From assembly GCA_965644265.1 (NCBI GenBank), contig OZ286468.1, forward strand, positions 76,074,001-76,138,000: a DNA stretch of 64,000 bases, given 5' to 3'. Positions 24,871 through 57,853 of this stretch are shown here, piece after piece (the first letter of the stretch is position 1; each line of letters begins with the position of its first letter). The stretch comes from Glycera tridactyla (lineage: Eukaryota). The translations under genes were made by a program, and so were the position numbers. Below the pieces are notes generated by a model. The model ran no database searches and was not told the origin of the DNA. It worked only from the letters and a program-made list of their open reading frames with translations.

Positions 24871-25165
24871 NNNNNNNNNNNNNNNNNNNNNNNNNNNNNN
24901 NNNNNNNNNNNNNNNNNNNNNNNNNNNNNNNNNNNNNNNNNNNNNNNNNNNNNNNNNNNNNNNNNNNNNNNNNNNNNNNNNNNNNNNNNNNNNNNNNNNN
25001 NNNNNNNNNNNNNNNNNNNNNNNNNNNNNNNNNNNNNNNNNNNNNNNNNNNNNNNNNNNNNNNNNNNNNNNNNNNNNNNNNNNNNNNNNNNNNNNNNNNN
25101 NNNNNNNNNNNNNNNNNNNNNNNNNNNNNNNNNNNNNNNNNNNNNNNNNNNNNNNNNNNNNNNNN
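24871..25165. other. Assembly gap (run of N)
   Basis: 295 consecutive N. Confidence 1.
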
Positions 25166-27739: not shown

Positions 27740-28745
27740 AGACATGTTGTTCAGGATGCCCATGCCTGCAGCATGGGTGAGATTGAAGCATGCATCCAGC
27801 ATGGGATGAGATGCTATCATAGTGAGACGCCATTTGTTGATGCCCATACCGTATGCACTGGGATGTCATAAATTAGTAAACCCATGCATCCAGCATTGGC
27901 GAAGTTGAGTTGTGTGTAACGGAATAAGATGCTATGTATGAACCTCATGCTAAATGGAACCGGATACATATGTATAAATATGTTGTTCAGGATGCCCATG
28001 CCCCCAGCATGGGTGAGATTGAACCTGTGTTAAGGATGCTTATGCATTCAGCATGGAATGAGATGCTATTATAGTGAGACGCCATTTGTTGACGCCCATG
28101 CCGTATGCACGGGGATGTCATAAATTGGTAAACCCATGCATCCAGCATGGGCGAAGTTGAGTTGTGTGTAACGGAATAAGATGCTATGTATGAACCTAGT
28201 GCTAAATGGAACCGGATACATATGTATAGATATATTGTTCAGGATGCCCATGCCCCCAGCATGGGTGAGATTGAACCTGTGTTAAGGATACCTATGCATT
28301 CAGCATGGAATGAGATGCTATTATAGTGAGACGCCATCTGTTGACGCCCATGCCATATGCACGGGGATGTTATAAATTAGTAAACCCATGCATCCAGCAT
28401 GGGGGAAGTTGAGTTGTGTGTAACGGAATAAGATGCTATGCATGAACCTCGTGCTAAATGGAACCGGATACATATGTATAGATATATTGTTCAGGATGCC
28501 CATGCCCCCAGCTTGGGTGAGATTGAACCTGTGTTAAGGATACCTATGCATCCAGCATGGAATGAGATGCTATTATAGTGAGACGCCATCTACAGATGCC
28601 CATGCCATATGCACGGGGTTATCATAAATAAATATACCCATGCATCCGGCATGGGCAAAGTTGAGTTGTGTGTAATGGAATAAGATGCTATGTATAACCT
28701 TGTGCTGAATGGAACCGGATATTCAGTATGCCCATGCACCCAGCA
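27740..28745. repeat. 252-bp tandem repeat array (~4 units)
   Basis: Near-identical ORF-track entries at 27817, 28069 and 28321 (period 252). Confidence 0.92.
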
Positions 28746-33100: not shown

Positions 33101-35821
33101 GACTCTGAGTCAGCGATAGTATGCAAAGACTGCAATAAGCTTTGTTATTGTTCATATTGCTATGAGGAACACAAGCGTCTTCGTGGTAAGAAGAAGTCGT
33201 ATTCTATGTGTTCCAGGTCGTGGTTGTGTCCGCTCTGTAGCAGGACAGTTAACACAAAAACGAGGTCCAAGACCGATCACAAGTGTGGTGAGCACTTTTG
33301 CAGGAGGTGTTCCAGACACGTAGTTGGACGTCATCAGTGTTATATAAGACCTATTAAATCTAAAAGAAAGGGTGTTGTGAGCAAGAACGATATTTCGATG
33401 TATATTGCTTTCGACATCGAAACATGTCAAGATGACCTGTTCCAATGCTGTGAGGGTTACACTCCGCCTGAAAGATGTCAACTATGTCGTGAGCATTAGC
33501 TGCCGTGTGGAAAGTGTTTGAAATGTATGAAGTGCGGAAGTGCGAAGTGTGGAAGCTATGTGCACCAGGCGAATTTAGTTGTTGCTGAAAAATGGTGCAA
33601 GTATTGTCAGTCGATTACATTCTCGGATTCCGAATTCTGCACTCATTGTGGTGACAGGTGTGCCAAGTGCAGGGTTAGGAAGAGGAGTGGTAGTGGACTG
33701 CACGATTACAGGTCGCCATTTTGCAGTAACGGCAAGTGTGGAAGGAGGAGACTTTTTTTTTGGAATGTCTTGCTTGGGTGAATTTTGCGAGTGGATGTGT
33801 GCGGTAGCTCATTCTTATGCTACCGTTGTCAGTCACAACGGTAGCAGATTCGATCAGTATTTTGTGTTACATCAGCTACTGCAGTCACAGGTGAAGTTAC
33901 ATAAAGTAGTAGTAAACGGCGGCCAGCTACTTTTTGTGAAAGTTGGTCATCAGATACGAATCGTGGGGAATTTTTATCTGTTCCTTTGGCGAAATTACCG
34001 TCAATGTTCGAATTAACGTCGGAAATTGATGGTGAATTGTCCAAGGGGTATTTTCCTCATCTGTTCAACACGGTTGCCCGCTCTCAGGAGGGATATGAAG
34101 GGGAGTATCCATCGGAGGAAAGCTACAGTGTGGAATCTATGAAGCCGGGTCAGGTTGACATATTCCGGCAGTGGCTCGCGGACAAGCGTCAGAGCGGCCA
34201 TCTGTTCAACCTGAAGCGGGAGTTGGTTGCATACTGCACCAACGACACGACGATATTGCGTAAAGCTGTGATATCGTTTGACAAAGTGATATATGATTTG
34301 GCTGGTTTGCACCCCTTCCGAGAGTGCTTCATGATAGCCTCATTGGCCATGAAAATTTTCAGGAAAATATATATCACTGAGATGTTAACATGTACTGTTC
34401 GAGATAGGGATACTTCATCTGTCACCGAAGTTGGGGCGGTCAGACGAGATGGCATGTTGAAAATTGACAAAGGAAACGAGATGGTTCCAATTGCTGTTTT
34501 TCCAAATTTGGAGGTTGTGAAAGAGAAATTTGAACGAAGTTTTCTTGGAATAACTCCCCATTGTGGCTATCGAACCCAGGCAAAATTATTCAGTCGAAAG
34601 GCCTGCGCTTGGATGGAGTATGTCTCCCAGAAAGATGATATTTATATACTGCATGCCGGAAATAAGCAAGAGGTTTCCATCAGACGTTTTGACGGCAAGC
34701 TGTTCCATGTTGATGGATACTTTCCTGGGGCGGGTAACCCTGAACCGGACGTGAATGAGAGTGTGAGTGACGTTCCTGCAACTGCAGTCGTTTATAATTT
34801 TTTTGGCTGCTTGTGGCACGCTTGTGAGGAGTGTTATCCATCTGGTCGTGGCGACGTTCGATGCAAGAAGACAGGAAAAACGTTTAATGAGATGTATGCT
34901 TCTTCTCAGATCTATTTGAATGAATTGGCGACAGTCTGCTTGAATGTTGTAACTATTTGGGAGCATGAGTTTGATGATCTGATTGAGAACGATGAAGAAG
35001 CTGGTCGAATATATCGAACACTGGAAATCGATGAACCTCTAGATCCTCGCGATGCTTTTATGGGTGGCCGCGTGGAGAGTGTGAGATTACTGTGGTCGAA
35101 AGAAAAGGCTATCGATGGGGAGAGGGTGTCGTATTCTGACTTTTGTAGTTTGTATCCATTTGTGCAAAAGACTAAACCATTCCCCTGTTTTCATCCGGAA
35201 ATTAGGACCAGAAATTTTGGAAGCATAAGTAGTGTTGTGATAGCTGCGTTCGTGACTGGGTATGGGAGACACGAATTGCTGCAGGAGATGGAGCAGATTG
35301 GTGAGTCGCTCCTGTATACAGACACAGATAGTTTGATGTATGCATCGACCGACGGACAGTACGCTCCATCTCATGGGTGCTTTTTGGGTGACTTGACGCC
35401 GGAGATTCCTGAGGGCACTTCAATTGAAGAGTTTGTATGCACAGGCTCAAAAAGCTATGCTTACAAGCTATCCAATAAGGAGACTGTTCTCAAGTACAAA
35501 GGGTTCTCTGTGAGTCATGCTGCAGACAAGATACTGAATTTCGACTCTATGAAGCGGATGACTGAGTCGTATTTGGCAGGTGAACGCGGTCCCGACGGTG
35601 TTGTGGAGGTACCTCAAAGACAGATAAGGAGGGACAAAAAATCATTATCGATTATGACAGATAGAAATTTTAGTAAGAAATATCAGTTCACGGTAGATAA
35701 AAGAGTGGTGCTGCCAGATGGCTCGACTATCCCGTTCGGGTATAGAGGCAAGGATCTCGGTAAGATCAGGATAAGGGAGCAGGGGTGTGAAGATGAAATG
35801 GTAGACAAGGGTTCAAATTAA
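30141..35821 (+). pseudogene. polB: Protein-primed family B DNA polymerase with long spliced N-terminal extension; disrupted
   Basis: Present: N-terminal Polinton motif (NDNRLCLMRAI), Cys/His zinc clusters, ExoI FDIET, ExoII HNGSRFD, KGYFPHLFN, ExoIII YCTNDT, Vsr-like insertion (VDGY...GCLWHAC...IWEHEF), FMGGRVE, motif A DFCSLYP and motif C YTDTDS. Lesions: frameshifts at ~32210, ~33100, ~33760 and ~33990, stop at 33497-33499, and motif B region missing. Confidence 0.93.
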
Positions 35822-36589
35822 GTTGCTCTCTATCTTTCTACGCTCTCCGCAGCAATCAAGTATCTGTTTGTTGGGGTCCCACGCAATCTATTTCAGTCGA
35901 GCGATCCACACACCTCTATCTGTAACACATTTATATACACACACGCACTCAGACATCATGTGGGGTGAGATGTGCTACCTATCTCCGTGGTGCTATTGCT
36001 TTGCAACTTTATCCTCTTTCATCATAAGCTGCCCACAAGACATGCCGCCTTATAGGAATGCGGAGACGTTATCTGCTGACATAGTTTATGTTGGTGGAAT
36101 TGCTATCAACTATGACACAACTACGAGTGAGTATGAGGGAGGGCGTATGTACACGTTTGTTTGTTATATCCACCTGCTTCTGGAATGCACTCCAACTCAT
36201 AAATGTTCGCTGGGGTGTCTCTACAGTTGAGCTCAGTGGGCTGGTCGCGGGAGGGCGTTTGTAATATTATATTTATCAACGTGATAGAGCCAGAGAGATG
36301 GTGACCCAACCCCCCTCCCCCCTATTCGTGGTTGGTTAACATTGTGTGTGTGTGTGTGTGTTTGACGTAGCTTGGTATAGCGCGCGCCGCCACGATATCG
36401 AATGAGCAGATGTTGTCAATTAGTACTGTACATCGTTCAAGTCCCCCCTTCCATGAAACAGTCAATATATATTTTGTGTCCGAGGTCGTTGCTGATCAAC
36501 AGTTTGACAGTTGTAGGCACAAATGTGGAGCGGCACGCCTGGATGATACCCCAAGTGGTGCGCTCAGTTGTTTGATTCCGGATGTATGT

Positions 36590-36995
36590 TCACCACCACC
36601 ACCTGCACCACCACCACAATCTGCACCACCACCTGCACCACCACCACACACCATCACCTGCACCATCACCACAATCTGCCCCACCGCCACACACCATCAC
36701 CTGCACCACCACCATCAGCTGCACCACTACTGCCACCTGTACCACCACCACAATCTGTACCACACATCATCACCTGCACCACCACCACCACCCGCACCAC
36801 CACCACAACCCGCACCACCACCACAATCTGCACCATCACCACACACCATCACCTGCACCACCACCACACACCATCACCTGCACCACCACCACACACCATC
36901 ACCTACACCACCATCACCTGCACCACTACCACCTGCACCACCACCACACGCCATCACCACCACCACATACCATCACCTGCGCCACCACCAACTTG
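36590..36995. repeat. (CAC)-rich low-complexity tract built from CACCACCAC(A/C)/CACCTGCAC units
   Basis: Seen directly; it generates the His/Thr/Pro-rich ORFs in all three + frames. Confidence 0.92.
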
Positions 36996-39335: not shown

Positions 39336-42300
39336 TGTAATCCTTCCAATATGACAATGGAATTAAACCAGTCATCCGACAGGCTTGTAGGAGTATTCCC
39401 TCCTCTTCCTTAAGATGCAACCTTGGCAAGAAGTTTATATCTGATTAAATTACCATTATCAAGAACAGCAGGAAGCAATGTATAGGTTAACCGGGCTTTT
39501 ACCCCATTTATCCCAATGTCAAAATAAATGGCATTGCTCCTGTGGATCGATGTTCACAAAAATATATACGTTGTACTAAAAGATGTTAAAATGCGCGATC
39601 AGTATTACATGTTGAATCCCATTGTTTGCCAGCTCTAATGAAACCATAAATCTATAAAGACATCTCATCTATCACACAGGGAACTCAATTGTTGGTTCAA
39701 AAGTATAAGATGACACATAAATAGAGTTGTAGATACATATTTTAATTTGTATAAAGTTCACATAGTAGGTAGGTTGTAAATGATAGATCATAATTTGAAT
39801 GAAGCAATATAGATTATCACAGTATCAAGTAGACAAAAAGTCAGTTATACTCATGATGAAATAAATAAATTCATTTCAAATATTCAGATCTGAATTATAT
39901 ACATATATGACAAATATGGATGAACTCGTGTTACATAAATACCAGTGATACATCAGAATTATTCAACTCACGACATACTCATACACAGGATATTCATGGC
40001 CGAATGACAAAGTGAGGTACCTCAATGAGTTATACAAGTACACACTCAAATAGTCACAAGATTGAGCTCAAACCCTTTTATAGTACTATCTTCTTTCTTG
40101 TTCCATCGTTGACTTGGGCGCTTGAGAAGTGGCCACTGCAGCTAGCTAGAAATATAAACAAAGTCAGAGACACTGTGTCTAGATAGTTAGTGCACTTTAG
40201 ATATATGACTTTAAAAGTTTGGGTTAAAGACCCACGATGCAAGATCGACTTTAAAAGTTAATATAGTGGTGGCCACCTAGTTGCACATGTGATGACGAAC
40301 TTTGGTTATATATCCATATCAGCTAGAGAATGATGGTAGCTGATACTAGAACGTGTATCATAGATGGAAGTAGAAGTAAAGAGGAGACATCATTCCTCTC
40401 GAGTGAAGTAGCTTATCTCGTAAAGATAGCTAACAGCATCTCACCGTGTGAAGAGATTATGTCCTACACATTTCCCATGTGTATAGTGCGTTTAACACAC
40501 TAAAGAATATGTAGACGACGACTAGGCATATCCGCCTATATTAGTAGATTCCCATAAGCCCGGGAGGCGACGTGGGAATGGAGTGGCCTGAAGAGTACGC
40601 ACCTCTTCAATTTACGACATCTCAGACGCGTTGGTCGCTGCAAGAAGATAAAAAAAAGTCTCCTACCAACTTGTCCAAGTATCATAAAGAAAAGTTTTAA
40701 TTCAAAAAGTATCTTTAAACAACTCTAAGTTTTTATTTATGTTTGTTGCGTGCACTTAGTTACTTGCAGTTGCCAGATCTATTATAGTGGGAAAGCAGGA
40801 TCCCACTCTATTCCCCACTAACTAAATAGCATAAGAATTTAACTTACAAGTTACCATTGATCAAGTTACTAGAAATATTTCAACATTCAGTTGAAGAGAT
40901 TGTCAAAAGACAATCAGCAAGTATCACCGTTGAAAAGAAATCTCAATGCACTTAAGCCATTATCAACGGAGCAGGCACTGAGCCAACTAAGTTAATCTAT
41001 CAATGAACAAGGCATTAAAATATCATCAGCTGTATCAGAGAGAGCTAAGTTCACGGGAAAATGAACTAGAAAGGTGAACACACCAAGTCCTCTCTCAGTC
41101 AGCTGGGATCATGATGCAGCAGCAATACAGCGAAAAAGTTGAAGTCCAACTGTCTGCATGAAAAGAGCAAGCACGCTTTTCAAAATCAAAAATAGTTAAG
41201 TCCTCATCAAATCAAATTCAAAAATTTGAATAAATTCTAAATTAAGAATCCGAGATAGAGAAATCAATCTATTCAGAACAGGTGGTCTTTGTAGACAGTA
41301 TCAGATAGAGTCACCACTCACCGAAGCAAGAGGCAAGATCTGAAATCAACCCAAGTTCCCCCTCCCTTACACTGCGAGTATGACCTACCTAACATAGACC
41401 GGAACGCACTAAGTCACAGCTGCAACAGCAGCGGGGTCTAAGTTCCGATCTACCAAGTCCGTGCTAAGTTCGAATTCTAAAATTCACCAAATCCCAATTT
41501 CAACTCCTTTCAAGCCATTTGGTAATGTCTAAAGTCGAAATTAGTCATGTAATTCCAGAAATATAAGAGCGAAATGCATTTACATGCAGTCCCATATGTC
41601 ACAAACCTCAAACACAAATGTGCTTACTAGGTAAGACCATGAGTAAGTCCGGTAAGCACCGTGCTGAGTTTCAGTCAACGCGCTAAGTTCGCGCTGTCAA
41701 ATCACAAATAGCGCTAAAGCCAGCACACTGAAGTTCTATAAAAGCAATCCGCACATAACGAGAAACAATTCCGATCAATTCTAAAGCATCTAAAAGCTTT
41801 TATCCAAAAGTGAAAAAGTTTCAAACTTGTTGAAAAGTGTAAAGTGGATCGGAAGCTCAAAGTGAGGCTCATACATGTGGCGGATGGAAATCCAAAATGG
41901 CGGATTGTTTACATCTGACCGATCAGTCAGAAACAGCTGTTCATTCCAGAACGCTCAGAAAGTATCTCGGAGCTCAAATGACAGCGCATAGCAGCTTATT
42001 CATTACGAGAGCTAAACAATTACCAATATAGCCGTTTGAAGGTCTAAAATCAATCCAAAAGAATTTTCCTTCGAAAATACAGCCTAACGTGATGTCGCAG
42101 ATCATATAGACCAAAAATCTCAAGGTGGTCACATGTGACAGGTTGGTCTCAATACGGAGGTTCCCTAAAAAAAGTAGGTCACGGGATTTAGGGACATCAC
42201 ACAAGACTAAGCAAGCTTAGGACGGGTCCGTGCTTAGGATATACAGCGCTTAGGACAGAAATCAAGCTTATCAGAGTGGACCTTCTCCGAAAAAGTCTAA

Positions 42301-44508
42301 ATTCAGGCCGGGCACATGAATCACAAGCAGACACTACGTGTAAACAAAACAAGCCTCGGTTTGTCGTCTCCCCTACATGTCTATTACAAGTACGAGCACC
42401 AAAAACATTCCACCGGATCTTCAATTGACAAATACGACAGTTGTGGTCATAGAAATTGAAATACCATCAAACTAGCACTTGATCGTTTATAAACAAGCTT
42501 TTTGCAAGCCGAAATAAATTCAGAAAACTGAAATTGAAGCATATTTGATCGGTCAATTAATCGATTAATCGATCGGTTAACCGTCAAAGAATTCCAGATT
42601 TTCACACCATATGAACGACATTAGATTATTACCTTCTCAAAACAAGCCGTTTCAATGAAAATACGTTTTTCAATAAAGAATTTCACTCGGAAAAGAAAAG
42701 ATTGACTGGATCTCTATTCATATGATCAGGGAGCTAAAGAAAACAGATCAGCTGTGTGTGCTATTTACGAAACCAGCAGCAGAGTTCACCTTAGCGGTGA
42801 CCTGGTTAGTACACATGACAGCGAGCTGCCATTGTCATACCGAGATAGGCATGTTCATTTCAACTCAGCCCACATGGACTGGTAGAGTAGCCGGGTCTAA
42901 AAACACACAGATTCAGAGAGAAAAGACACAGTCGTCTCTGCTGATATTTCAACTGAAAATGATCTTACAGAAATATTCCTTTCACAATATTATTCCTATA
43001 GAGAAATCCCGTGAATATAATTGAATTTTGAATGATTCAATCATCTAATTCACACAGAAATCCGATATATTACACAAATGATCAGAATCTGATCGGTAGG
43101 AGCTATATTGAGACGTGTTAGCAGTTCATACACACAGCTTCTCTCACCCGGAGGATTCAGTGAGTCCAAGCGTTAAATACTATATTACAAATTCCTGCAT
43201 AGCCCTGTTCCACCCAAACAGGCGTACTGCACCGGGAACAACGCAGGAGGAACACGGCATAGTTCCACGCAGTTCCACTTGTTCCAAAATCACCGGAACA
43301 GCACAGGGAATTAACAGAAACAGATAGAACTACCAATATCCGCGAGAATTATCAGCTAGTTGTTTGGATCAGGACGGCATTTATGGAACAAAATCCTATC
43401 ATCCAAAATGATCCAAAATCATCCAAAAACATGCAAATTCTAGATTTTGACCACGTATGCTCGAAAGATGGTACATTCAATACAAAACACGGAAGATCCG
43501 ATGACATGAAATGGCATGATACTAAAAATGGCCATTTGGGCAATTGGGGAAAATGACTCCTAATAAAGCCTCCTAAAAGGATCCTAAAACATTTCTAAAT
43601 CTCATGAACACTTACTGGATGTAGTAGAGCTCAGGATGATGTAGTGGAGTCCATTGTTTCTATTCCAGTGCAGCGATACTGGAGAAGCAAGATGTTCTCT
43701 GCTCCCGACTCCCTCAGCTCCGGTGCGTACTCTTCAGGACAGAATTTCCAAGTGCCAGAACTCCTGTCTGGAATACTTTTATGTATCCGTCCTGAAGAGC
43801 CAGCAAAGAGCGGGAAAAAAGAGCGGGAGAAGCGATGTCAAGCTCCCCGAGTCAGCTACCTCGAAAGTATTCGCTCGAGACTTTTCTAGATCAATTACAG
43901 AAGATTTTCTGAGAAAACATGTACATTGCATGTACATTGCAGATCACTTTCCTCCTGCGCGACTCCGAGCTCCTCCTGCTCAGGGAGTCATTCACTATAC
44001 TGTGTGATCAACTATGTTGGCAAAAAACCGTCCGATAAACGGCCTATCCCACGGACTAACAAATTTGCCTCAAAAGATACAATTCCCATCTTCGGGATAT
44101 CTTTAGCCCTAATACAGATACGTATCGTGTAAAAATATGGTCTTCCTACGTCCATTATTCATGAAGATATCGCATTTCTACTGTTTCACCCTAGAAACAC
44201 TGCAAGCTGGGCACCCACCGCGAACGGCGATTCCACTGCGTGTAACTCGAACTCTAGTTGCCACACCAACAACCAGATAGGTGAAACAACGAATATTAGA
44301 AAACTAACAGGATTTCTACTGTTTTTCAACTAATAGAAGTGAAACTATCTCATGCTTCTGAAGTAGGAAGGAATAATTATCAATCTAGTAGCGTAAAAAT
44401 AGTGCCGCGGGCCTCAAAAGAGGAATTCCGCGAATTCCGCTACCAGAAATCCCTATATTGTTCATGTTATTCTAACAAACGTCACATGTTCAAAAACGTG
44501 GCGTTACA
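39336..44508 (-). repeat. 3' LTR (5173 bp)
   Basis: Colinear with 52681-57853 at a constant offset of 13345; nine substitutions found by eye. Confidence 0.97.
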
Positions 44509-44732
44509 TGCTCCCGGGGGTATAAATGTTTGTGCTGCAACCAAACATTGCGAAACCAAACAAGACAAAAATATGTGTCCCACACTTATTGCCTATAACA
44601 TTAACAAGAACAATATATGGAACACAACCCTATTCTCAAAAATAAATCTTACCATCTAAAAACTTATCTTCAAAAATAATAATATAACTAATTCAAGGTC
44701 CTTTCCCAAGCAGAATTTTGGATCTACTGGAG

Positions 44733-45472
44733 CACTTGTATCCTTCGGGCTCTAAAGGAGCGCACCCTAGGCTAGATACCTTTCCAGCTTAGTAGCCGAC
44801 TAAGCCCTCCCTGCTTCTCAGAGACTACTTTTCATAATCTCCGATCACAGAGAGCACAGCTCGCAAAAGCTAACTGTGGCCTGACTGTACATTGAGCCAT
44901 CTTGAGAACAAAACCGGAAACTCAAGATGACCGGCTGGTGACCCAGTCGATAGCGATCAGGACATCTTGGTCACCCAAGAGCCCAACCGACGGTCTGATC
45001 CACTGTGGGTTCATGCCACCCGATGTTAGCTGAGCAGTAAACTTTGACCGTTTTCACCAGCCTTGCCTGTCACATACATACAGAACTAAAACTATAATGT
45101 ATGCGAGGTGTAGGTCGTCACCTACGTACCACACACAACCACTTATCAACATCGCAGATCATTTCTCGGGCATAGAAAAAGTTATCAAATGACAATACCA
45201 TAACTATACTTTAGTAGGTAAGTCATGGACTCCTTTTACATGTCATTTGAAGTGAAACCATTTTCCAGCAAAACAACCTACAACATCAACAGATCGGCCA
45301 ATGTGTCGACTAGACGGTACCACAGTACTATGTTAATACACAGTTCGTTAGACACGTGGGCCTTCAGTTTCTCCCAAGCACTATATCCACAAGTTTAACG
45401 TGCCCCCGGATCCTCACGGATCCACTGCCGCCTGTTCTAGGCACTCCTATAAGGAGCCTATCCCTCTTGAGT
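44733..45472 (-). ncRNA. Group I-like self-splicing intron A (740 nt, no ORF) in the retrotransposon 3' UTR
   Basis: Boundaries CUAGGU|ACUC...CAAGUG|CUCC. Guide GCCUAG (+ strand 45437-45442) pairs with the exon hexamer with a terminal U-G. Covarying hairpins and a P4/P6/P7-like core are shared with copy B. Confidence 0.75.
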
Positions 45473-47876
45473 ACCTAGGTGGAAAGCTTATTTACAATTC
45501 CATGAGAAGCAAAGGATCCTAAACCTCCAGAATAGGTCCCGCTGATCTAGTTTGTCTGTCTCCTTTCAACAGCCAGGAGATATATCCACCGTATCTATCT
45601 GGAGGTTTTCTCACCCTTTCCGGTTTTCTACGGGCGATTCCAGGTGGTGAAGCATTCACTACTTCAGTCTCTTCAGACAATGGTGAATCTGACGCAGAAT
45701 GATATTCTGTGTCAGGATTCAGATCAGACTCAGTATCTTCGTCATGAGCGTCAATCTCATCAGAATTCTCAAGAAGAGGATTTTGGGCCTCTTCAATATC
45801 AATTCCAGCTTCCACAACACTGGTTTCTGACTGAGATCTAGCTGGGGTGGACTCTAAATCCTCACCTAAATGTTGGTCTACATTTGGCTGAATTTGTCCT
45901 GGTTCAGCATGTTCAGGATGATCGGATTCAATTTGAGCTGTTGGAGACAAATCACTAGCAGATGGAGTTGTTACCACTACATATTCTTCGTCCTCAAATG
46001 AATCAGAATCACAGCCCTCAGAGCTATCTTCCAATTGACCTTTTTGTTCTGAAGCACGGGTTCGGTATCGAGATTTTTGGCCAGGTTGTATAACTGTACC
46101 AGCATCTTTACTCACCGTGTCTTCAGCAAAGAGCTGAACTATATCCTCACTTATACCCTTTTCATCTAGAACCACATGAGTTTTCAAATATTTTCTATCA
46201 AAATCTTCAATAGATTTTAACATATCAATATGTAAAACTCTGTGAGGTTTTCTTGGCCTAGACAAATTCTTTAACTCATATACTCTGTTCTCGTTATCTG
46301 CCAATCTTACGACTTCATAAACTTCGGGCAACCAGGTTGGGGCTAGCTTGTGCATCCCTTTGATACCAACGTTCTTAACAAGAACTTTGTCACCAACTTT
46401 GAGTATACACGATTTAACTTTTTCATCATATCTATACTTGTTAGACATGTGAGAAAAGTCTTGACTCTGGCTAGCAATGGTTTGGACAAATTCCAACCTA
46501 GACTTCAAAGCTTCTACGTATTGTTTGAGATTATCATATTTCCTATCCTCAGGATAAGTTCCTAACATGACATCTACTGGTAGACGACTCTTCCTTCCAA
46601 ATATAAGTTCGAAAGGTGAGAACTTGGTGGAGGAGTGGATTGAGCTATTATATATGTTGGTTAAATGCCCTAAATATTTACTCCAAGAGCAAATTTTCTG
46701 TGTGGACATTGTGCCAACCATGTCAATCAAGGTACGATTGAATCTTTCGCAAATGGCATCACTCCTAGGTGAATACGGGCAAGTAAACACCTTTTTGATA
46801 CCAAGTAAATGACAAAGTTGGTCAATTACTTGCGATTCAAAATTTCTGCCTCTGTCAGATAAGAGCTTTTCAGGCAAGCCAAAGATGTCAAAAACTTTCT
46901 CTACCAGAGCTTTAGCGACCGTGGTGGCGGTCTCATTCTTGGTGGGTATAGCAAAAGCATATTTGCTAAACACATCAGTTACAATCAACACATGGCCAAA
47001 TCCATGTTTATCCATATCCAAGGATAGATAATCCATGGATAGGACTTGGAAAGGTCGTTGAGCTGCAACTTCACCTAACATGCCTTGTTTAGAGGGAGAA
47101 GTCTTTTTCAATAGACACTCTTTGCAAGCAGAGATATATTCTGTGATAGCTTTAACATGTCCAGAAAGATAAAATCTTCTCTGGAAAAATTTGACTACCC
47201 TCTCTACTCCAAAATGGCTCATCATTCAGAGCATGTAAAACTTGGGGCAAACACTTGTGGGGCAAAATAATCAAAAGGTATTCAAATCCTTCGATTTCAG
47301 TTCTTTTGCACAATACCCCTTCTGAATTAAAAACTAACCTATCTCGGAAGTAGAAAAGCTTCCTATATTTCTTTGGAAAGTCTTTAGGCTTACAAGGTCG
47401 CCGTTTGTACATGTATTGAATCACTAGATTCAAATCAGAGTCCTTGAGTTGTTCAGTTCTCCAGTCAAAAGACTGGGAGTCACTTGAGACACCAAAACTT
47501 GACGCGTCTAAATTACCTACATTTACATTTTCAATCAATGGAGTGGTTTCTGAAGACAGCTCCGAAGAGTGCTCAACCACTTGATCAGGTGTCTCATGTA
47601 GTCTAGACAATACATCAGCGTCGACATTGACCGGTCCAGGCTTGTAATGTATGGTGAAATCATAGTCTCCAAGGGCAGCAAGCCATCTCTGAGATGTAGC
47701 ATCAACCTTGAGAGATCTATGTATATACGTGAGAGGGTTATTATCAGTGTATACCTTAAATGGGTGGCCATATAAATAAAAGTTAAATTTATCGACTACA
47801 GCCCACTTGAGCCCAAGAAACTCAAGTTTGTATACAGGATAATTTTTCTCAGTATCTTTAAGAGATCTAGAAGCAT

Positions 47877-48657
47877 CACTTGTATCCTTCGGGCTCTTCC
47901 AAAAAAGCGCACCCTAGGCTGGATACCTCTCCGACCTAGCGGCCCATCCAAGGACGCCAACTAGGCCCTCTCTGCTTCCCAAAGACTACTTTTCATAGCC
48001 TCGATCACAGAGAGCACAGCTCGCACAATTGCTTACTGTGGCCTGACTGTACATTGAGCCATCTTGAGCATCAAAGTCTTCAAGATGACCGGCTGGTGAC
48101 CCAGTCGATAGCGATCAGGACATCTTGGTCACCCAAGAGCCCAACCGACGGTCTGATCCACTGTGGGTTCATGCCACCCAATGGAAACTGAGCAGTGAAC
48201 TTTGACCGTTTTCACCAGCCTTGCCTGTCACATACACCTTACCAAAATTGGACTCATAGAGTTCAAGGATGCATGCTAGGTGTGGACGGTAATCCACGTA
48301 CCACATGTGACCACTTATCTCAGTAGACTAACCAATACCATCCGTGAGCAAGTTATCAGACGCAATACCAATAACTAGACTGCAAAAATCTTAATTCACA
48401 GCCAGCCTGGACCAATTTTACATGCCATCTGAATAAGCCAACCTTACTCACGGAGGACAGTCTACCCAACGGACAGCCCGATCAACATGCCGACTAGACG
48501 GTACCAGAGTACTGTGTCAATTCACAGTTCGTAAGACACGGGGATCTTCAGTATCATCCCAGCACTATATCCTGGAGTTTAACGTGCCCCTAGACCTTTG
48601 CAGGTCCACTCCCGCCTGTTTTTGCCACCCTTTATGAGGAGCCTATCCCTCTTCAGT
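47877..48657 (-). ncRNA. Group I-like self-splicing intron B (781 nt, no ORF) in the RNase H coding region
   Basis: Boundaries UUUGCU|ACUG...CAAGUG|AUGC. Removal restores TGC TAT GCT TCT AGA (C-Y-A-S-R). Guide GGCAAA (+ strand 48621-48626) pairs with the exon hexamer with a terminal U-G. Confidence 0.8.
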
Positions 48658-50811
48658 AGCAAACAGGATGCAACAGATTCTTGTCACCAAATTGCAACAA
48701 AACAGCCCCCAGTCCTGTGGTACAAGCATCTACATGCAAAATAAAAGGTTTCTCTAAATCTGGGAATGCTAACACCGGGGGATGGGTGAGTAGTTCAATC
48801 AGCTTCTCACGAGCTTCTTGACATTCCTCGTCCCAATCTTCTACCACAGAGTGCTGTAAAGCAGGCTGTTTCACAGGAGGTCCAAACTTACTTTTGGGCT
48901 TATACTTGACCCCTTTTAAAAGACGTAACAAAGGTTGAGCTATACTGCTATAGTGAGGGATATGCCTCCTAAAAAATCCAGCAAATCCTAAGAAACTCAT
49001 GACATCTTTTACTGTTCTGATAACAGGCCAATCCTGTAAAACTTTAGTTTTTTCAGGATTGCACATCACACCTTTATCAGAGATGATATAGCCAAGATAA
49101 ACTATCTCCTGGGACGCCAAGGTACACTTGCCAGGGTGTATCTTGAGACCAGCTTCACGCATAAGAGTGAGAGCTCTGGACAAAAGTTCCAGATGTTCCT
49201 CCATAGTGCGGCTAAAAATAATGACATCATCAAGAAAACAAATACATCCCTCATAAAGCATTGGTCTGAGGATGTTCTCCATGCAACGTTGAAAAGTTGC
49301 AGCAGAAGTCTTAGCCCCCTGAACCATGCGATTGTATTCATACAATCCAAAAGGTGTAGAGAAAGCAGTCTTCTCTTTATCCCTCTCCTCGATTTCGATA
49401 TTATAGTACCCGGATCTTATATCCATTTTGGTAAAAAAAGTATTACCAGCCAGGTAGGGTAAAATATCGTCAAAACGAGGGAGAGCATAACAGTCCCTCA
49501 CTGTTTTATCATTGAGATGTCTTAAATCAGTCACCATCCTAACTCTCCCATCTGGTTTTTGCAAAAAAATAGGAGCACTAGAATAAGGAGACACTGAAGG
49601 TCGTATGATACCTTTCTCCAGTAACTGATTTAAATGATCTTTAGCAGCAGCATACATCTTTGGAGGTAGATTTCTGTGTCTGACCTTAAACGGAATATCG
49701 TCTGACAAATTGTACCCATGTTTCACACCCTCTACTTTTCCAATATCATAGTCTGACTTAGAGAAAGTAGCTAGATTATCTTGAAGACAAGCTTCAAGAC
49801 TTTCCTTCTCTAGATCAGACAAATGGGATAAACTATCTACATGGTCCCACAGAAGTTTAATATCAGGTGATATTTCTTCTTCCTCATCCTCTCCTAGTGT
49901 AGTTTTAAACTGGTCGACATCGTCAACCCCCTCAAACTCAGAAAGGTTTAGTCGAGTAGCATGCACTCTGACATCATCCGAGGCTAATTCAAAAGGTATA
50001 GTTGAAAGTGATACTACACCAAAATCATTTCCTTTGCAGACAGTATAAACAGTAGAAGAAGTATTATGTACAGGCACATGAACTGTTGACAAGGAAGCTA
50101 AATTAGCATCAAGCACAACTGGAGTCTTCATCAAAAAGTCATTGTTTGGTTCAATCAAAATTGCCGCATTTATGCCTACTAATTTAGATCGAAATTTTAA
50201 TTTAACAATTGATGTTTGACCTGGAAGAATGGATATATCTTGTGCCACTTTGGCACTACCCAAAAATCCGTTTGAAATGCTTTCAGCTTGTTGAACCTTG
50301 ACGAAAGAATTATATACAACATCTAAAATAGAACTATGTGACGGATGTTGGCAGTTATTTAAATACCAGAATTTCTCAATGGCATTCATGCCTACAAGAC
50401 ACATATGGTTCTGAAAAGTGAAATCAAAACCACAATTGTCTTTCAGCACTAAAAATAATACATGTGTGCCTTCATTAGTTCCGGACAATCTCTTGCCCAT
50501 TGTCACAAAAAGTTCCACAGCTCCAACATATTGTAGGGCTTCCCCATTAACTTGATTCACTCTCAACAATGAAGACACAGGTTGTAGCGGAACATAAGAA
50601 AAATATTTCCGATACAGTCCTTCATTTATGAGTGAAACTTGACTTCCAGTGTCAATTAATGAAGAAATAACAGCTCCATTCAATAAAATGTTATGAATGT
50701 TTTGCTTGCCAACTAAAAACGGTGGTAGAGTAAATAAGCTTGAAACATGTACATCAATGGGTGGACCAGCATCATCTCCGGAGAAAGAATGGTCCAGTTC
50801 TTTCTCTGGGA

Positions 50812-52215
50812 TTAGTTTCCCTGCTGATTCTGAGAGGCTAAATAAGCTGCTCGTTGCTGACGCATGCGAGAAAACATCTTGCTTTCATCCCAATCTATAG
50901 AACAAGTCTTAGCTACATGGCCTTTCTCCCCACAATTATAACATATAGCTTTCTCTAACCATTTAGGTTTCCACTAGGGTTTCACACCATCATGTGAAAA
51001 CAGAGGTTTCTCAGTGGCAGCACTAGCTGCAGCTACGACTGGAGTTTTGCCAGATAGTTGTAAACTCTTCGGGTTCTGAACTACTTGGTCTATCTGACCG
51101 GACAATTTCTTAGAAGCAGATCTAATGTCATACAAAATGTCACTATGTACAGGAGTAGATTTGATGGAAGGGTTGGAAATGGCTAAAGCAGCTAAACTAG
51201 TTTCTTCCTCAACAGAATTAACATAATCTAAAAAAGATAGGTTAATTGAAGAAACAGAAGCTGTCTTCTTGTTTCTCATACACCTCCTCTTGCGCTCCTT
51301 ACTTTCCCTCTCAAAAGCTTGCAACTGAGTACTAAAATCTTGGTACCCAGGATATTTGTCAAGGTCTTTGAGTTTGAACTCAGAAGTGATCATAAAGTGA
51401 TCAGTGGACTGTAACCCTCTAAGAAAATAATGTATTAGAGACTGGTTCACATCAGCAAAATACTTAGGATCTACTCTCACCATTTCTGATATAATATCAT
51501 CTATCCTAGACAAGAAATCAGATGGAGATTCAGTGACTTCCTGAATACAGTCCATCAGCCTATCGACTAGATGGGAAATACTGTCTGAAGCACCATAAGT
51601 GATCGCTATCTTATTCACTAAGGCAGCACTGGTCTCTATTGCCCTAGCAGCTCTCAAAGCTTTCCCTGTTAAACTGAGTCGCAATGTTTTCAGTTTCTCC
51701 TTCTCGGAAATATCGGCATCGTTCATGACATGTTCATTGGCCAACAACAGCCATTCTTCCACCGTACATTCCCCAGAGCCAGGTTTGTCCCTACCCGAGA
51801 ACTTCTTCAAACCTCAATAATGAGCAGTAGCTTCAGGTTTGGGTGATCGTGGTGTTGTGGGTGCAGGTGGTGTCTGAACAATGGTAGTTGAAATGATTGC
51901 ATCCTTTCGAAGCTGTTCGACAAAAGAGACATGATAAGCATCATTTCCTAGAATGATACAATCATTGTCATCTAACACGTCACAATTCTTATCGAAGGCT
52001 ACATGATCTCGCGAGTGGATCAACAAACAATTGCAAGGTTCAGCCACAGTGTCATAGATAAGAAAAAGGTCAAAATCTACGAATATAGTCCCTACCAACT
52101 TGGTGGTAGCAGCTTTCCAATCTGGATCAGCAGCTACAGGCACTGGGTACCTTTCAATCACCATGCAATAATAAGGGGGAATATTCAACCTTTTGCAAGC
52201 CACGTCAGGATCCAT
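50812..52215 (-). pseudogene. gag: gag (PNMA-like capsid with C-terminal CCHC zinc knuckle), two in-frame stops
   Basis: One frame from 52215 to TAA at 50812. It contains Y*GLKKFSG (TGA at 51814-51816), EEWL...EKEKLKTLRLSLTGKAL, TAG at 50974-50976, then CYNCGEKGHVAKTC. Confidence 0.92.
50815..50821 (-). promoter_or_regulatory. -1 ribosomal frameshift slippery site G GGA AAC at the gag-pol junction
   Basis: An X XXY YYZ heptamer sits immediately before the gag TAA. The -1 frame is open (GKLIPEKELD...) into the protease LIDTGSQVS. Confidence 0.85.
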
Positions 52216-52660
52216 GTTGACGTTGCAAGATATATGGCACTACCCTAAATAGAGAATATAAATTCACAAAAAGAAAAGGGTATTAATTCTGTGTAAAGTA
52301 AAATGATTAATACATATGCAACACTCAGGCTAAATTCCGTATCTGAAACAAAGTTTTGGATTAATCTGGTATAAACCAGTGGCACCAAATCGCACTATTA
52401 ATACAGAATAAGTTGACACATACCAATTCAGCCAGTCCAGTATAGCATACAAGTCATCACTACTCAAATCCAGATAAAGATATAATGCATATAGAAGATG
52501 TAAATGAATAGATTAATACATGTCTGTAAACAAAAACATGCATCTACAAGTCATACAATTGTACCACAAATAAGACCACTGTATGATATAGTGAGATGAA
52601 ATTTGATCAATTAAATTTCAAAAACATCATGGCTGGGCAAATCAGACATCAACAAATCTG

Positions 52661-52678
52661 ATCCCGGACGAGCCCCCA
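52661..52678 (-). promoter_or_regulatory. Primer-binding site for tRNA-Pro
   Basis: The - strand reads TGGGGGCTCGTCCGGGAT, the 18-nt complement of the tRNA-Pro 3' end (same as the MuLV PBS), 2 nt from the LTR. Confidence 0.95.
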
Positions 52679-52680
52679 TG

Positions 52681-55600
52681 TGTAATCCTTCCAATATGAC
52701 AATGGAATTAAACCAGTCATCCGACAGGCTTGTAGGAGTATTCCCTCCTCTTCCTTAAGATGCAACCTTGGCAAGAAGTTTATATCTGATTAAATTACCA
52801 TTATCAAGAACAGCAGGAAGCAATGTATAGGTTAACCGGGCTTTTACCCCATTTATCCCAATGTCAAAATGAATGGCATTGCTCCTGTGGATCGATGTTC
52901 ACAAAAATATATACGTTGTACTAAAAGATGTTAAAATGCGCGATCAGTATTACATGTTGAATCCCATTGTTTGCCAGCTCTAATGAAACCATAAATCTAT
53001 AAAGACATCTCATCTATCACACAGGGAACTCAATTGTTGGTTCAAAAGTATAAGATGACACATAAATAGAGTTGTAGATACATATTTTAATTTGTATAAA
53101 GTTCACATAGTAGGTAGGTTGTAAATGATAGATCATAATTTGAATGAAGCAATATAGATTATCACAGTATCAAGTAGACAAAAAGTCAGTTATACTCATG
53201 ATGAAATAAATAAATTCATTTCAAATATTCAGATCTGAATCATATACATATATGACAAATATGGATGAACTCGTGTTACATAAATACCAGTGATACATCA
53301 GAATTATTCAACTCACGACATACTCATACACAGGATATTCATGGCCGAATGACAAAGTGAGGTACCTCAATGAGTTATACAAGTACACACTCAAATAGTC
53401 ACAAGATTGAGCTCAAACCCTTTTATAGTACTATCTTCTTTCTTGTTCCATCGTTGACTTGGGCGCTTGAGAAGTGGCCACTGCAGCTAGCTAGAAATAT
53501 AAACAAAGTCAAAGACACTGTGTCTAGATAGTTAGTGCACTTTAGATATATGACTTTAAAAGTTTGGGTTAAAGACCCACGATGCAAGATCGACTTTAAA
53601 AGTTAATATAGTGGTGGCCACCTAGTTGCACATGCGATGACGAACTTTGGTTATATATCCATATCAGCTAGAGAATGATGGTAGCTGATACTAGAACGTG
53701 TATCATAGATGGAAGTAGAAGTAAAGAGGAGACATCATTCCTCTCGAGTGAAGTAGCTTATCTCGTAAAGATAGCTAACAGCATCTCACCGTGTGAAGAG
53801 ATTATGTCCTACACATTTCCCATGTGTATAGTGCGTTTAACACACTAAAGAATATGTAGACGACGACTAGGCATATCCGCCTATATTAGTAGATTCCCAT
53901 AAGCCCGGGAGGCGACGTGGGAATGGAGTGGCCTGAAGAGTACGCACCTCTTCAATTTACGACATCTCAGACGCGTTGGTCGCTGCAAGAAGATAAAAAA
54001 AAGTCTCCTACCAACTTGTCCAAGTATCATAAAGAAAAGTTTTAATTCAAAAAGTATCTTTAAACAACTCTAAGTTTTTATTTATGTTTGTTGCGTGCAC
54101 TTAGTTACTTGCAGTTGCCAGATCTATTATAGTGGGAAAGCAGGATCCCACTCTATTCCCCACTAACTAAATAGCATAAGAATTTAACTTACAAGTTACC
54201 ATTGATCAAGTTACTAGAAATATTTCAACATTCAGTTGAAGAGATTGTCAAAAGACAATCAGCAAGTATCACCGTTGAAAAGAAATCTCAATGCACTTAA
54301 GCCATTATCAACGGAGCAGGCACTGAGCCAACTAAGTTAATCTATCAATGAACAAGGCATTAAAATATCATCAGCTGTATCAGAGAGAGCTAAGTTCACG
54401 GGAAAATGAACTAGAAAGGTGAACACACCAAGTCCTCTCTCAGTCAGCTGGGATCATGATGCAGCAGCAATACAGCGAAAAAGTTGAAGTCCAACTGTCT
54501 GCATGAAAAGAGCAAGCACGCTTTTCAAAATCAAAAATAGTTAAGTCCTCATCAAATCAAATTCAAAAATTTGAATAAATTCTAAATTAAGAATCCGAGA
54601 TAGAGAAATCAATCTATTCAGAACAGGTGGTCTTTGTAGACAGTATCAGATAGAGTCACCACTCACCGAAGCAAGAGGCAAGATCTGAAATCAACCCAAG
54701 TTCCCCCTCCCTTACACTGCGAGTATGACCTACCTAACATAGACCGGAACGCACTAAGTCACAGCTGCAACAGCAGCGGGGTCTAAGTTCCGATCTACCA
54801 AGTCCGTGCTAAGTTCGAATTCTAAAATTCACCAAATCCCAATTTCAACTCCTTTCAAGCCATTTGGTAATGTCTAAAGTCGAAATTAGTCATGTAATTC
54901 CAGAAATATAAGAGCGAAATGCATTTACATGCAGTCCCATATGTCACAAACCTCAAACACAAATGTGCTTACTAGGTAAGACCATGAGTAAGTCCGGTAA
55001 GCACCGTGCTGAGTTTCAGTCAACGCGCTAAGTTCGCGCTGTCAAATCACAAATAGCGCTAAAGCCAGCACACTGAAGTTCTATAAAAGCAATCCGCACA
55101 TAACGAGAAACAATTCCGATCAATTCTAAAGCATCTAAAAGCTTTTATCCAAAAGTGAAAAAGTTTCAAACTTGTTGAAAAGTGTAAAGTGGATCGGAAG
55201 CTCAAAGTGAGGCTCATACATGTGGCGGATGGAAATCCAAAATGGCGGATTGTTTACATCTGACCGATCAGTCAGAAACAGCTGTTCATTCCAGAACGCT
55301 CAGAAAGTATCTCGGAGCTCAAATGACAGCGCATAGCAGCTTATTCATTACGAGAGCTATACAATTACAAATATAGCCGTTTGAAGGTCTAAAATCAATC
55401 CAAAAGAATTTTCCTTCGAAAATACAGCCTAACGTGATGTCGCAGATCATATAGACCAAAAATCTCAAGGTGGTCACATGTGACAGGTTGGTCTCAATAC
55501 GGAGGTTCCCTAAAAAAAGTAGGTCACGGGATTTAGGGACATCACACAAGACTAAGCAAGCTTAGGACGGGTCCGTGCTTAGGATATACAGCGCTTAGGA

Positions 55601-57853
55601 CAGAAATCAAGCTTATCAGAGTGGACCTTCTCCGAAAAAGTCTAAATTCAGGCCGGGCACATGAATCACAAGCAGACACTACGTGTAAACAAAACAAGCC
55701 TCGGTTTGTCGTCTCCCCTACATGTCTATTACAAGTACGAGCACCAAAAACATTCCACCGGATCTTCAATTGACAAATACGACAGTTGTGGTCATAGAAA
55801 TTGAAATACCATCAAACTAGCACTTGATCGTTTATAAACAAGCTTTTTGCAAGCCGAAATAAATTCAGAAAACTGAAATTGAAGCATATTTGATCGGTCG
55901 ATTAATCGATTAATCGATCGGTTAACCGTCAAAGAATTCCAGATTTTCACACCATATGAACGACGTTAGATTATTACCTTCTCAAAACAAGCCGTTTCAA
56001 TGAAAATACGTTTTTCAATAAAGAATTTCACTCGGAAAAGAAAAGATTGACTGGATCTCTATTCATATGATCAGGGAGCTAAAGAAAACAGATCAGCTGT
56101 GTGTGCTATTTACGAAACCAGCAGCAGAGTTCACCTTAGCGGTGACCTGGTTAGTACACATGACAGCGAGCTGCCATTGTCATACCGAGATAGGCATGTT
56201 CATTTCAACTCAGCCCACATGGACTGGTAGAGTAGCCGGGTCTAAAAACACACAGATTCAGAGAGAAAAGACACAGTCGTCTCTGCTGATATTTCAACTG
56301 AAAATGATCTTACAGAAATATTCCTTTCACAATATTATTCCTATAGAGAAATCCCGTGAATATAATTGAATTTTGAATGATTCAATCATCTAATTCACAC
56401 AGAAATCCGATATATTACACAAATGATCAGAATCTGATCGGTAGGAGCTATATTGAGACGTGTTAGCAGTTCATACACACAGCTTCTCTCACCCGGAGGA
56501 TTCAGTGAGTCCAAGCGTTAAATACTATATTACAAATTCCTGCATAGCCCTGTTCCACCCAAACAGGCGTACTGCACCGGGAACAACGCAGGAGGAACAC
56601 GGCATAGTTCCACGCAGTTCCACTTGTTCCAAAATCACCGGAACAGCACAGGGAATTAACAGAAACAGATAGAACTACCAATATCCGCGAGAATTATCAG
56701 CTAGTTGTTTGGATCAGGACGGCATTTATGGAACAAAATCCTATCATCCAAAATGATCCAAAATCATCCAAAAACATGCAAATTCTAGATTTTGACCACG
56801 TATGCTCGAAAGATGGTACATTCAATACAAAACACGGAAGATCCGATGACATGAAATGGCATGATACTAAAAATGGCCATTTGGGCAATTGGGGAAAATG
56901 ACTCCTAATAAAGCCTCCTAAAAGGATCCTAAAACATTTCTAAATCTCATGAACACTTACTGGATGTAGTAGAGCTCAGGATGATGTAGTGGAGTCCATT
57001 GTTTCTATTCCAGTGCAGCGATACTGGAGAAGCAAGATGTTCTCTGCTCCCGACTCCCTCAGCTCCGGTGCGTACTCTTCAGGACAGAATTTCCAAGTGC
57101 CAGAACTCCTGTCTGGAATACTTTTATGTATCCGTCCTGAAGAGCCAGCAAAGAGCGGGAAAAAAGAGCGGGAGAAGCGATGTCAAGCTCCCCGAGTCAG
57201 CTACCTCGAAAGTATTCGCTCGAGACTTTTCTAGATCAATTACAGAAGATTTTCTGAGAAAACATGTACATTGCATGTACATTGCAGATCACTTTCCTCC
57301 TGCGCGACTCCGAGCTCCTCCTGCTCAGGGAGTCATTCACTATACTGTGTGATCAACTATGTTGGCAAAAAACCGTCCGATAAACGGCCTATCCCACGGA
57401 CTAACAAATTTGCCTCAAAAGATACAATTCCCATCTTCGGGATATCTTTAGCCCTAATACAGATACGTATCGTGTAAAAATATGGTCTTCCTACGTCCAT
57501 TATTCATGAAGATATCGCATTTCTACTGTTTCACCCTAGAAACACTGCAAGCTGGGCACCCACCGCGAACGGCGATTCCACTGCGTGTAACTCGAACTCT
57601 AGTTGCCACACCAACAACCAGATAGGTGAAACAACGAATATTAGAAAACTAACAGGATTTCTACTGTTTTTCAACTAATAGAAGTGAAACTATCTCATGC
57701 TTCTGAAGTAGGAAGGAATAATTATCAATCTAGTAGCGTAAAAATAGTGCCGCGGGCCTCAAAAGAGGAATTCCGCGAATTCCGCTACCAGAAATCCCTA
57801 TATTGTTCATGTTATTCTAACAAACGTCGCATGTTCAAAAACGTGGCGTTACA
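52681..57853 (-). repeat. 5' LTR (5173 bp)
   Basis: Followed on the - strand by CA and then the PBS. Confidence 0.97.

Follow-up and report, generated by a model that had tools for sequence, protein, structure and literature searches.

The 64,000-nucleotide (nt) stretch of the Glycera tridactyla genome considered here (GenBank assembly GCA_965644265.1, contig OZ286468.1, forward-strand positions 76,074,001 to 76,138,000; hereafter the window, to which all coordinates refer) raises the question of what kind of RNA is encoded by a structured element that occurs twice, in the same orientation and 3.2 kb apart, within one long terminal repeat (LTR) retrotransposon. An initial annotation of one copy described a ribozyme whose fold deviates from the canonical group I subgroups, and offered either a new subgroup or a distinct ribozyme class as its identity. 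The two copies, A and B, are quite probably group I-type introns that would be spliced out at the predicted junctions. As for the choice offered earlier, a divergent new group I subgroup in a new genomic niche appears to be the better reading, and a distinct class is unlikely. Together with their relatives, the two copies belong to a widespread and apparently undescribed family in mobile genes of the RNA polymerase II (Pol II) type, not in ribosomal DNA (rDNA). The two copies are placed as follows:

45472..44733, minus strand: copy A, a predicted complete intron of 740 nt, delimited by the end of A/B homology and by the family-wide ends
48657..47877, minus strand: copy B, a predicted complete intron of 781 nt, recognised by the interruption of pol within its RNase H motif

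In a pairwise alignment, A and B are 75.6% identical overall and 100% identical over a core of about 140 nt. No third copy was found in the window, and neither A nor B contains an open reading frame (ORF) of 100 amino acids (aa) or more. Both have the limits ACU(G/C)AAGAGGG...GGAUACAAGUG, with U as the preceding nucleotide and G as the last. The features lie where they were first placed, on the minus strand, which is borne out by the A/B alignment and is the right one by folding as well, since the minimum free energy of that strand is -276 kcal/mol with a z-score of -6.3 against shuffles, versus -3.1 for the plus strand. The extent first given to copy A was accurate at its 3′ end, 44733, and too short at its 5′ end; the element reaches 45472 and thereby includes P1 (P, J and L denote paired, joining and loop segments).

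The wider family was gathered by an exact-match search with a fixed 22-mer around J8/7. This invariant 22-mer, letter-identical in 59 copies, occurs in 56 Joint Genome Institute (JGI) metagenome contigs, which span 32 datasets and GC contents of 41-66%, and has no copy in bacterial and archaeal genomes. A second motif led to two phaeovirus-like viral contigs (L060 and L061), the only such finds in IMG/VR motif scans, in which the viral copy interrupts the major capsid protein gene. The viral copy is compact and occupies L060:2210-2754. A literature search returned no reports of group I-type introns in LTR retrotransposons or phaeovirus capsid genes.

The evidence for an intron begins with P1, the helix formed between the end of the upstream exon and an internal guide:

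45473..45478, minus strand: 5′ exon hexamer CUAGGU of A, the 5′ strand of P1, pairing with the guide; its last U makes the U.G wobble at the predicted splice site
45437..45446, minus strand: internal guide of A, GAGU.G.CCUAG, the 3′ strand of P1, hypervariable family-wide and always matching the local exon
48658-48663, minus strand: exon hexamer of B, UUUGCU, pairing with the guide of B
48621-48629, minus strand: guide of B, GGU.G.GCAAA, the 3′ strand of P1

RNAalifold, working unaided on fixed columns, paired the last five to six exon nucleotides with those just upstream of a conserved AACAGGCGG. Across 14 sequences each exon-guide pair takes four to five pair types, the junction pair is U.G in 13 and C-G in one, and the first intron nucleotide, A, pairs with U. 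Paired cells make up 96.9% of P1 versus 61.6% in shuffles, with none of 500 shuffles as high. Mean pairwise identity is 0.31 in the guide and 0.33 in the exon, no better than chance, versus 0.81 in the rest of the 5′ block; two copies that are 95% identical in that block (L026 and L058) nevertheless have only one of five guide positions in common. The same rule is satisfied in a high-GC subgroup (CUCGCU) and in the viral copy (GGCGGU). The flanks of A, B and more than 25 further copies share only the guide-complementary exon hexamer, and the near-identical introns of L005 and L017 have flanks that are unrelated apart from CUCGCU, to which their guide is complementary. This covariation of exon and guide supports the earlier proposal of a ribozyme-type intron with a group I-like P1.

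Exact excision, U|...G|, restores a conserved protein at four independent sites, where the joined exons were assessed as translations only and each exon piece was searched on its own. B splits the RNase H (RH) motif of pol: the upstream ORF ends ...LLHPVCY, with a stop one codon into B (UAC UGA), the frame downstream opens ASRSLKDTEKNY, and removing B exactly yields TGC TAT GCT, which reads ...HPVCY/ASRSL... in frame. In a relative at 42% (L002) this site is empty and the protein runs uninterrupted as ...HPCCYASRSLK.... The closest integrase relative (60% identity) lies on a Tara Oceans contig (L001) that begins inside a B-like element ending ...AUGCG, after which comes AUGCUUCUCGA; its pol site and codon phase are thus those of B. 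Elsewhere, excision restores the linker between reverse transcriptase (RT) and RH in L026 (IAAPLFA/LMKKDVKFVWTDECQ), the integrase core in L013 (GNR/WILTIID), and the capsid protein in L060 and L061 (...VIKEGMGG/VRYSN*, whose last residues are those with which about 20 uninterrupted capsid proteins of phaeoviruses end). Pfam searches of intron-flanking ORFs in five further loci gave no match. The 3′ ends were located by a pattern requiring ...GAAG-N(4-8)-AAG(U/C)G, and because this pattern itself demands the final G, its matches alone are no proof of a terminal G; independent support comes from close relatives, which diverge right after it, and from exon restoration, which needs that end.

The catalytic core was mapped with RNAalifold on three blocks and with our own pair counts under shuffle and slide controls:

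44933..45062, minus strand: first part of the core, with P3, J3/4, P4, P5, P6 and the 5′ strand of P7, from RNAalifold on 12 and 27 sequences
45054-45062 with 44933-44941, minus strand: P3, GGCUGGUGA/UCACCAGCC, with five of nine pairs compensatory
45046-45051 with 44990-44995, minus strand: P4, ACGGUC/GACCGU, invariant
44984-44989 with 44954-44959, minus strand: P6, CGGUUG/UGAUCG, with compensatory changes
44944-44951, minus strand: 5′ strand of P7, U(C)GACUG
44895..44932, minus strand: P8, GGUCAUCUUGAG ... CUCAAGAUGGCU, with a variable loop; relatives have other stems at the same position
44882..44894, minus strand: J8/7, CAAUGUA, then the 3′ strand of P7, CAGUC-A; the most conserved segment of the family
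44855..44878, minus strand: P9, CACAGU / GCUGUG, with an internal loop and an apical P9a; AU to GC double change in 5 of 20 sequences

The order of these segments, P3-P4-P5-P5'-P4'-P6-P6'-P7-P3'-P8-P8'-P7'-P9, is canonical for group I, and the junctions are AA (J3/4), AAA (J4/5), CA (J5/4), GG (J7/3) and CAAUGUA (J8/7, 7 nt). P3, P4, P5, P6 and P9 were found by RNAalifold unaided. Compensatory changes occur in P3, P5, P6 and P9, and P3 and P9 covary also in the viral copies V1 to V3, of which V2 and V3 are two diverged intron cores just upstream of the capsid ORF (L060:38-340 and L060:548-890). All helices except the invariant P4 beat 500 of 500 column shuffles and every slid register. In the metagenome set the search pattern fixed the 3′ strand of P7, and the test of this helix comes from V2 and V3. 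P7 reads U(C)GACUG/CAGUC-A in 38 of 41 copies, A(C)GACUG/CAGUC-U in V2 and G(A)GAACG/CGUUC-C in V3; in the latter two all pairs are standard, and three of six are changed on both sides. Over the 41 copies the P7 bulge varies (C, G, A) and the G-C pair adjacent to it is invariant. This pair is the position of the predicted guanosine-binding site, and the P7 letters GACU/AGUC are presumably the same as in the Tetrahymena intron.

The core as first drawn contained real helices under the wrong names. The helix GGCUGGUGA/UCACCAGCC, then called P4-like, does pair, with compensatory changes, but is P3, and the 12-bp stem with a variable loop exists as described but is P8 and not P6-like. The P7 proposed between R-like and S-like segments did not survive: the S-like GCGAGCUGUGCU pairs with the adjacent CACAGU of P9, and where it becomes CCGUG or CGGUG it is tracked by CACGG or CACCG, whereas the R-like segment never changes. 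The oddities listed for this map (a bulged U in P7, a very short P8, and non-consensus J8/7 and J5/4) disappear under the corrected one, and are thus artefacts of misassigned helices.

Several points weigh against assigning A and B to self-splicing group I introns. Rfam gave no match for the whole window at the gathering threshold, no group I match at E<=10 for the 5.5-kb region, B alone, L026, V1 and V2/V3, and none at E<=1 for 14 further loci; the initial annotation had anticipated that no standard model would score the element as typical, which agrees with the absence of matches for single copies at E<=10. The sample is limited to close relatives, since it was collected with a fixed 22-mer. 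One copy (L006) has C, not U, at -1. At several loci (L010, L028, L037 and L053) no ORF is restored, and the introns there may lie in untranslated regions (UTRs) or in decayed elements. P4 is uninformative because it is invariant, and the support for P7 comes from two diverged copies on one viral contig, V2 and V3, known as cores only. For P10 and P9.0, inspection by eye found that no more than two to four pairs could form in A and B, in a register that is not shared between copies. Lastly, the pol of the host copy is possibly dead, given a frameshift in its integrase.

The silence of every Rfam covariance model, along with an unusual 5′ domain and a pseudoknot involving L1, would be expected of a distinct ribozyme class whose group I-like P1 and terminal G arose by convergence. 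We consider this very improbable in view of the canonical order and junction lengths under the corrected map, in which the whole core stands in group I order including the P3/P7 pseudoknot, the 5′ bulge of P7 sits beside an invariant G-C pair, J8/7 has 7 nt and J4/5 is rich in A. A loss of self-splicing in an intron derived from group I, which would then depend for its removal on a host or element-encoded protein or persist as an unremoved relic in non-autonomous elements, is easier to entertain and still unlikely. It could account for the integrase frameshift in the host copy, for the many copies where no ORF is restored and for truncated or deleted copies (L033, L036, L016), and the large extra 5′ domain could serve as a protein-binding platform. 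However, strong purifying and compensatory selection acts on the core, guide and ends throughout 32 datasets, LTRs that are 99.83% identical imply a recent move with both introns aboard, and the viral capsid gene must be expressed, which exact excision would allow by restoring it. Least probable of all is the absence of any intron, with A and B being a non-autonomous transposon, a solo LTR or a structured cis-element such as a packaging or export signal, duplicated in the retrotransposon. The presence of two copies in the same orientation, 3.2 kb from each other within a single retrotransposon and one of them in the 3′ UTR, where retroviral export elements lie, might suggest as much, but the complementarity of guide and exon changes with each site, exact excision restores four different conserved protein motifs, and the element is also found in the capsid gene of a DNA virus. 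A transposon or solo-LTR insertion was in any case rejected on the lack of target-site duplications and terminal repeats around flanks that have only the guide-complementary hexamer in common, and A is not the 3′ LTR, as the true LTRs are 5.17 kb long and begin 224 nt downstream of it.

Other intron types were discarded at the level of the ends. Group II introns have GUGYG...AY ends, a domain V and a domain VI with the branch point; the introns described here have A(C/U)C or GAAG at the 5′ end and AAG(U/C)G or CCG at the 3′ end, and Rfam at E<=10 gave no group II match. A spliceosomal intron, with GU...AG or AU...AC ends, is incompatible with the boundaries of B, U|ACUG ... AAGUG|AU, where no GU-AG pair yields the conserved motif; in the viral gene, GU/AG sites give a non-conserved C-terminus whereas U|...G| gives GMGGVRYSN*. 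U12 and Helitron readings were ruled out against the exact ends.

Outside the core, the predicted group I-type intron is enlarged by peripheral domains on both sides:

45309..45435, minus strand: 5′ domain, with the closing helix ACAGGCGGCAGU / ACUGUGGUACCGUCUAGU around P2, P2.1 and P2.2, from RNAalifold on 14 sequences unaided and shuffles
45408-45423, minus strand: P2 hairpin with a GNRA loop
45063..45308, minus strand: variable region of about 250 nt from the 5′ domain to P3, with low A/B identity and a length that varies in the family
45110-45125, minus strand: covarying hairpin within the variable region
44733..44854, minus strand: 3′ domain, with P9.1 (which includes the AGAUUA/UAGUCU hairpin), P9.2, terminal helices, the tail AAGUG and, at 44733, the terminal G
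45455..45460, minus strand: L1 loop UAGGCU, the 5′ partner of a pseudoknot, pairing with AGCCUA at 44768-44773

The 5′ domain is a multi-helix junction, and the long stretch between P2 and P3 noticed at the outset amounts to about 350 nt. In the 3′ domain, which contains three nested terminal helices, 24 of 41 predicted pairs are compensatory. The peripheral hairpins drawn by eye from A and B held up well: GGAUCC-GUGA-GGAUCC versus GGACCU-GCAA-AGGUCU, UGGG/CCCA versus GGGAU/AUCCC, ACUGUG/CAUAGU versus ACUGUG/CACAGU, GUAGGU/ACCUAC versus GUGGA/UCCAC, and AGAUUA or AGGCUA with UAGUCU are all confirmed between the two copies and by compensatory changes in the wider family. The long-range pairing of UAGGCU in L1 with AGCCUA near the 3′ end was likewise correct and covaries. 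In this pseudoknot 72 of 78 cells are paired, with AU to GC and GC to AU double changes that produce the variants UGGGCU/AGCCCA and UGAGCU/AGCUCA; the double changes occur in three copies from two lineages (L028 and L037 together, L029 apart). The P2-P3 insertion and the L1 pseudoknot are unusual for group I, and we know of no pseudoknot between L1 and the 3′ domain in IC1- or IE-type subgroups.

Both introns lie in a Ty3/gypsy-type element with the following layout:

39336..57851, minus strand: Ty3/gypsy-type LTR retrotransposon hosting A and B, identified by its LTRs, target-site duplication, primer-binding site and proteins
51810..50977, minus strand: gag, PNMA-like
50683..48656, minus strand: protease (PR), RT and the N-terminal part of RH
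47871..47155, minus strand: C-terminal part of RH and the start of integrase (IN)
47225..45522, minus strand: IN, with a frameshift near 47225

The LTRs are about 5.17 kb long, with TG..CA termini and the target-site duplication CAAG, and the primer-binding site is of what we take to be the tRNA-Pro type. An exact-protein look-up of the integrase found no match. Its frameshift, at about 47225, falls within the zinc-finger region (...HALNDEP / MMSHFGVERV...), and this copy is probably unable to make its own integrase. A lies in the 3′ untranslated internal region, 46 nt past the integrase stop and 224 nt ahead of the 3′ LTR, and breaks no ORF. Because the LTRs are nearly identical, the divergence of A and B must far predate the integration of this copy, which means that the element has retrotransposed carrying both introns.

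These observations can be assembled into a mechanism, which is proposed from sequence comparisons. An internal guide of 5-6 nt and the end of the upstream exon form P1, in which the U.G wobble marks the predicted 5′ splice site. The catalytic core combines a P4-P6 stack with a P3-P7-P8-P9 domain containing the P3/P7 pseudoknot, and two guanosine-initiated transesterifications would excise the intron and join the exons. Splicing of B would be needed for RT, RH and integrase to be translated as one protein, while the form that is reverse-transcribed would have to be unspliced RNA, since the intron is inherited. Retargeting of the guide at each site, together with near-identical introns at different sites that share the hexamer, points to guide-directed insertion, which would most simply proceed by reverse splicing into RNA followed by reverse transcription. 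We tentatively extend this to a hitch-hiking model, which remains somewhat more doubtful than probable: a group I lineage would have moved out of rDNA and organelles into Pol II-transcribed selfish genes of eukaryotic nuclei (LTR retrotransposons and integrating giant viruses), spreading by guide-directed reverse splicing into the genomic RNA of the retrotransposon and by the RT and integration of the element, with its 5-nt guide rapidly retargeted.

The closest structural comparison is with nuclear rDNA group I introns (Tetrahymena large subunit (LSU); IC1, IE), with which the family shares a P1 guide with U.G and a terminal G, a P3-P9 core with the P3/P7 pseudoknot and a P7 bulge beside a G-C pair, and an extended P2/P9 periphery with loop-loop tertiary pairings. 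In contrast to those introns, the A/B family resides in retrotransposon pol genes, UTRs and a viral capsid gene, has no Rfam match, and contains the P2-P3 domain of about 350 nt. Group I introns are also found in protein genes of chloroviruses, and the capsid-gene copy of L060/L061 resembles such phage and chlorovirus introns in being a self-splicing-type intron in a viral protein gene, although the A/B family lacks a homing-endonuclease ORF and also inhabits LTR retrotransposons. Plant Ogre LTR retrotransposons carry a GU-AG spliceosomal intron within the pol region; there too, the host is a very large, long-LTR Ty3/gypsy element whose pol is interrupted by an intron, the ORF is rebuilt by splicing and unspliced RNA is the genome, whereas A and B have no GU-AG ends and instead have a guide, a U.G wobble and a terminal G. 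In R2, an HDV-like (hepatitis delta virus-like) ribozyme is present, and hammerhead ribozymes occur in Penelope-like elements and retrozymes (PMC4209133, PMC4918200). These small ribozymes resemble the A/B family in being catalytic RNAs embedded in eukaryotic retroelements, but they are self-cleaving and process transcript ends, while members of the A/B family are predicted to be exon-ligating introns. IStrons, bacterial chimeras of a group I intron and an insertion sequence (IS) transposon (PMC4227781, PMC13521648), offer another partnership of a group I ribozyme with a transposable element in which splicing renders the insertion harmless at the RNA level; they differ in having transposon genes inside the intron and bacterial DNA transposition, whereas A and B are gene-less introns inside a eukaryotic retrotransposon.

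According to a review (PMC3679873), all known nuclear group I introns are located in rRNA genes. This restriction would be overturned by a group I-type family that is conserved and mobile and resides in retrotransposon pol genes and a giant-virus capsid gene, and A, B and their relatives would be the first nuclear group I introns outside rRNA genes. Were the hitch-hiking model true, it would be the first natural case of the long-postulated mobility of group I introns by reverse splicing plus reverse transcription, and this old model of intron spread would become directly testable here because the intron RNA would be reverse-transcribed as a matter of course. The family also offers dozens of natural retargetings of one ribozyme scaffold to different 6-nt sites, which may be useful for trans-splicing design, and, as a structured RNA of 650-900 nt with new peripheral domains, adds material for structural work. 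Annotation pipelines at present read such pol and capsid genes as broken or read-through proteins.

Some loci carry further peculiarities. The capsid gene of L060 may hold three introns, since its ORF is without the N-terminal residues that relatives have before IQIAA.GRQN. Four phaeovirus-type capsid proteins (P0123, P0125, P0128 and P0130) read through another insertion, which follows ...FNEAYNLLV six codons before the GMGG site and may be a further intron in a different position. One short contig carries, on its opposite strand, a second intron copy (L016:926-1285, minus strand) whose P6 contains an insertion of about 150 nt. In the natural deletion variant L033 (core at about 2486, minus strand), the 3′ strand of P7 leads almost directly to the terminal GGAGGUCGAAGGAAUC..., without P9-P9.2, and in L036 (intron on the minus strand) a copy truncated at P5 passes straight into telomere-type (TTAGGG)n repeats. 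The sole known RNA recovered in the Rfam searches is an HH9-type hammerhead match (L004:1328-1396, minus strand; 40.7 bits, E 4.5e-7, under the gathering score), which lies on the same strand as the intron of L004 and upstream of it by about 200 nt.

Elsewhere in the window, a 611-aa ORF at 33986-35818 (plus strand) encodes a DNA_pol_B_2 domain of the protein-primed type, as in Polinton/Maverick elements, within a region of strong positive GC skew (28-36 kb). A second retroelement fragment at 62138-62935 (minus strand) is GC-rich (about 57%) and includes an integrase core and a chromodomain. An N run occupies 24871-25165. At 1-24000 a unit of about 8.1 kb is repeated in tandem three times; copies one and two do not differ, the third is 91-96% identical, and every copy has arrays of a 27-nt repeat (e.g., 4031-4546) and a (CA)n tract (about 259-330). 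A tandem repeat with a 252-nt period is present in four copies (88-95% identical) at 27790-28695, and the CAC/GGT-type trinucleotide-rich arrays at 36586-36991 and 21037-21132 are mutual reverse complements.

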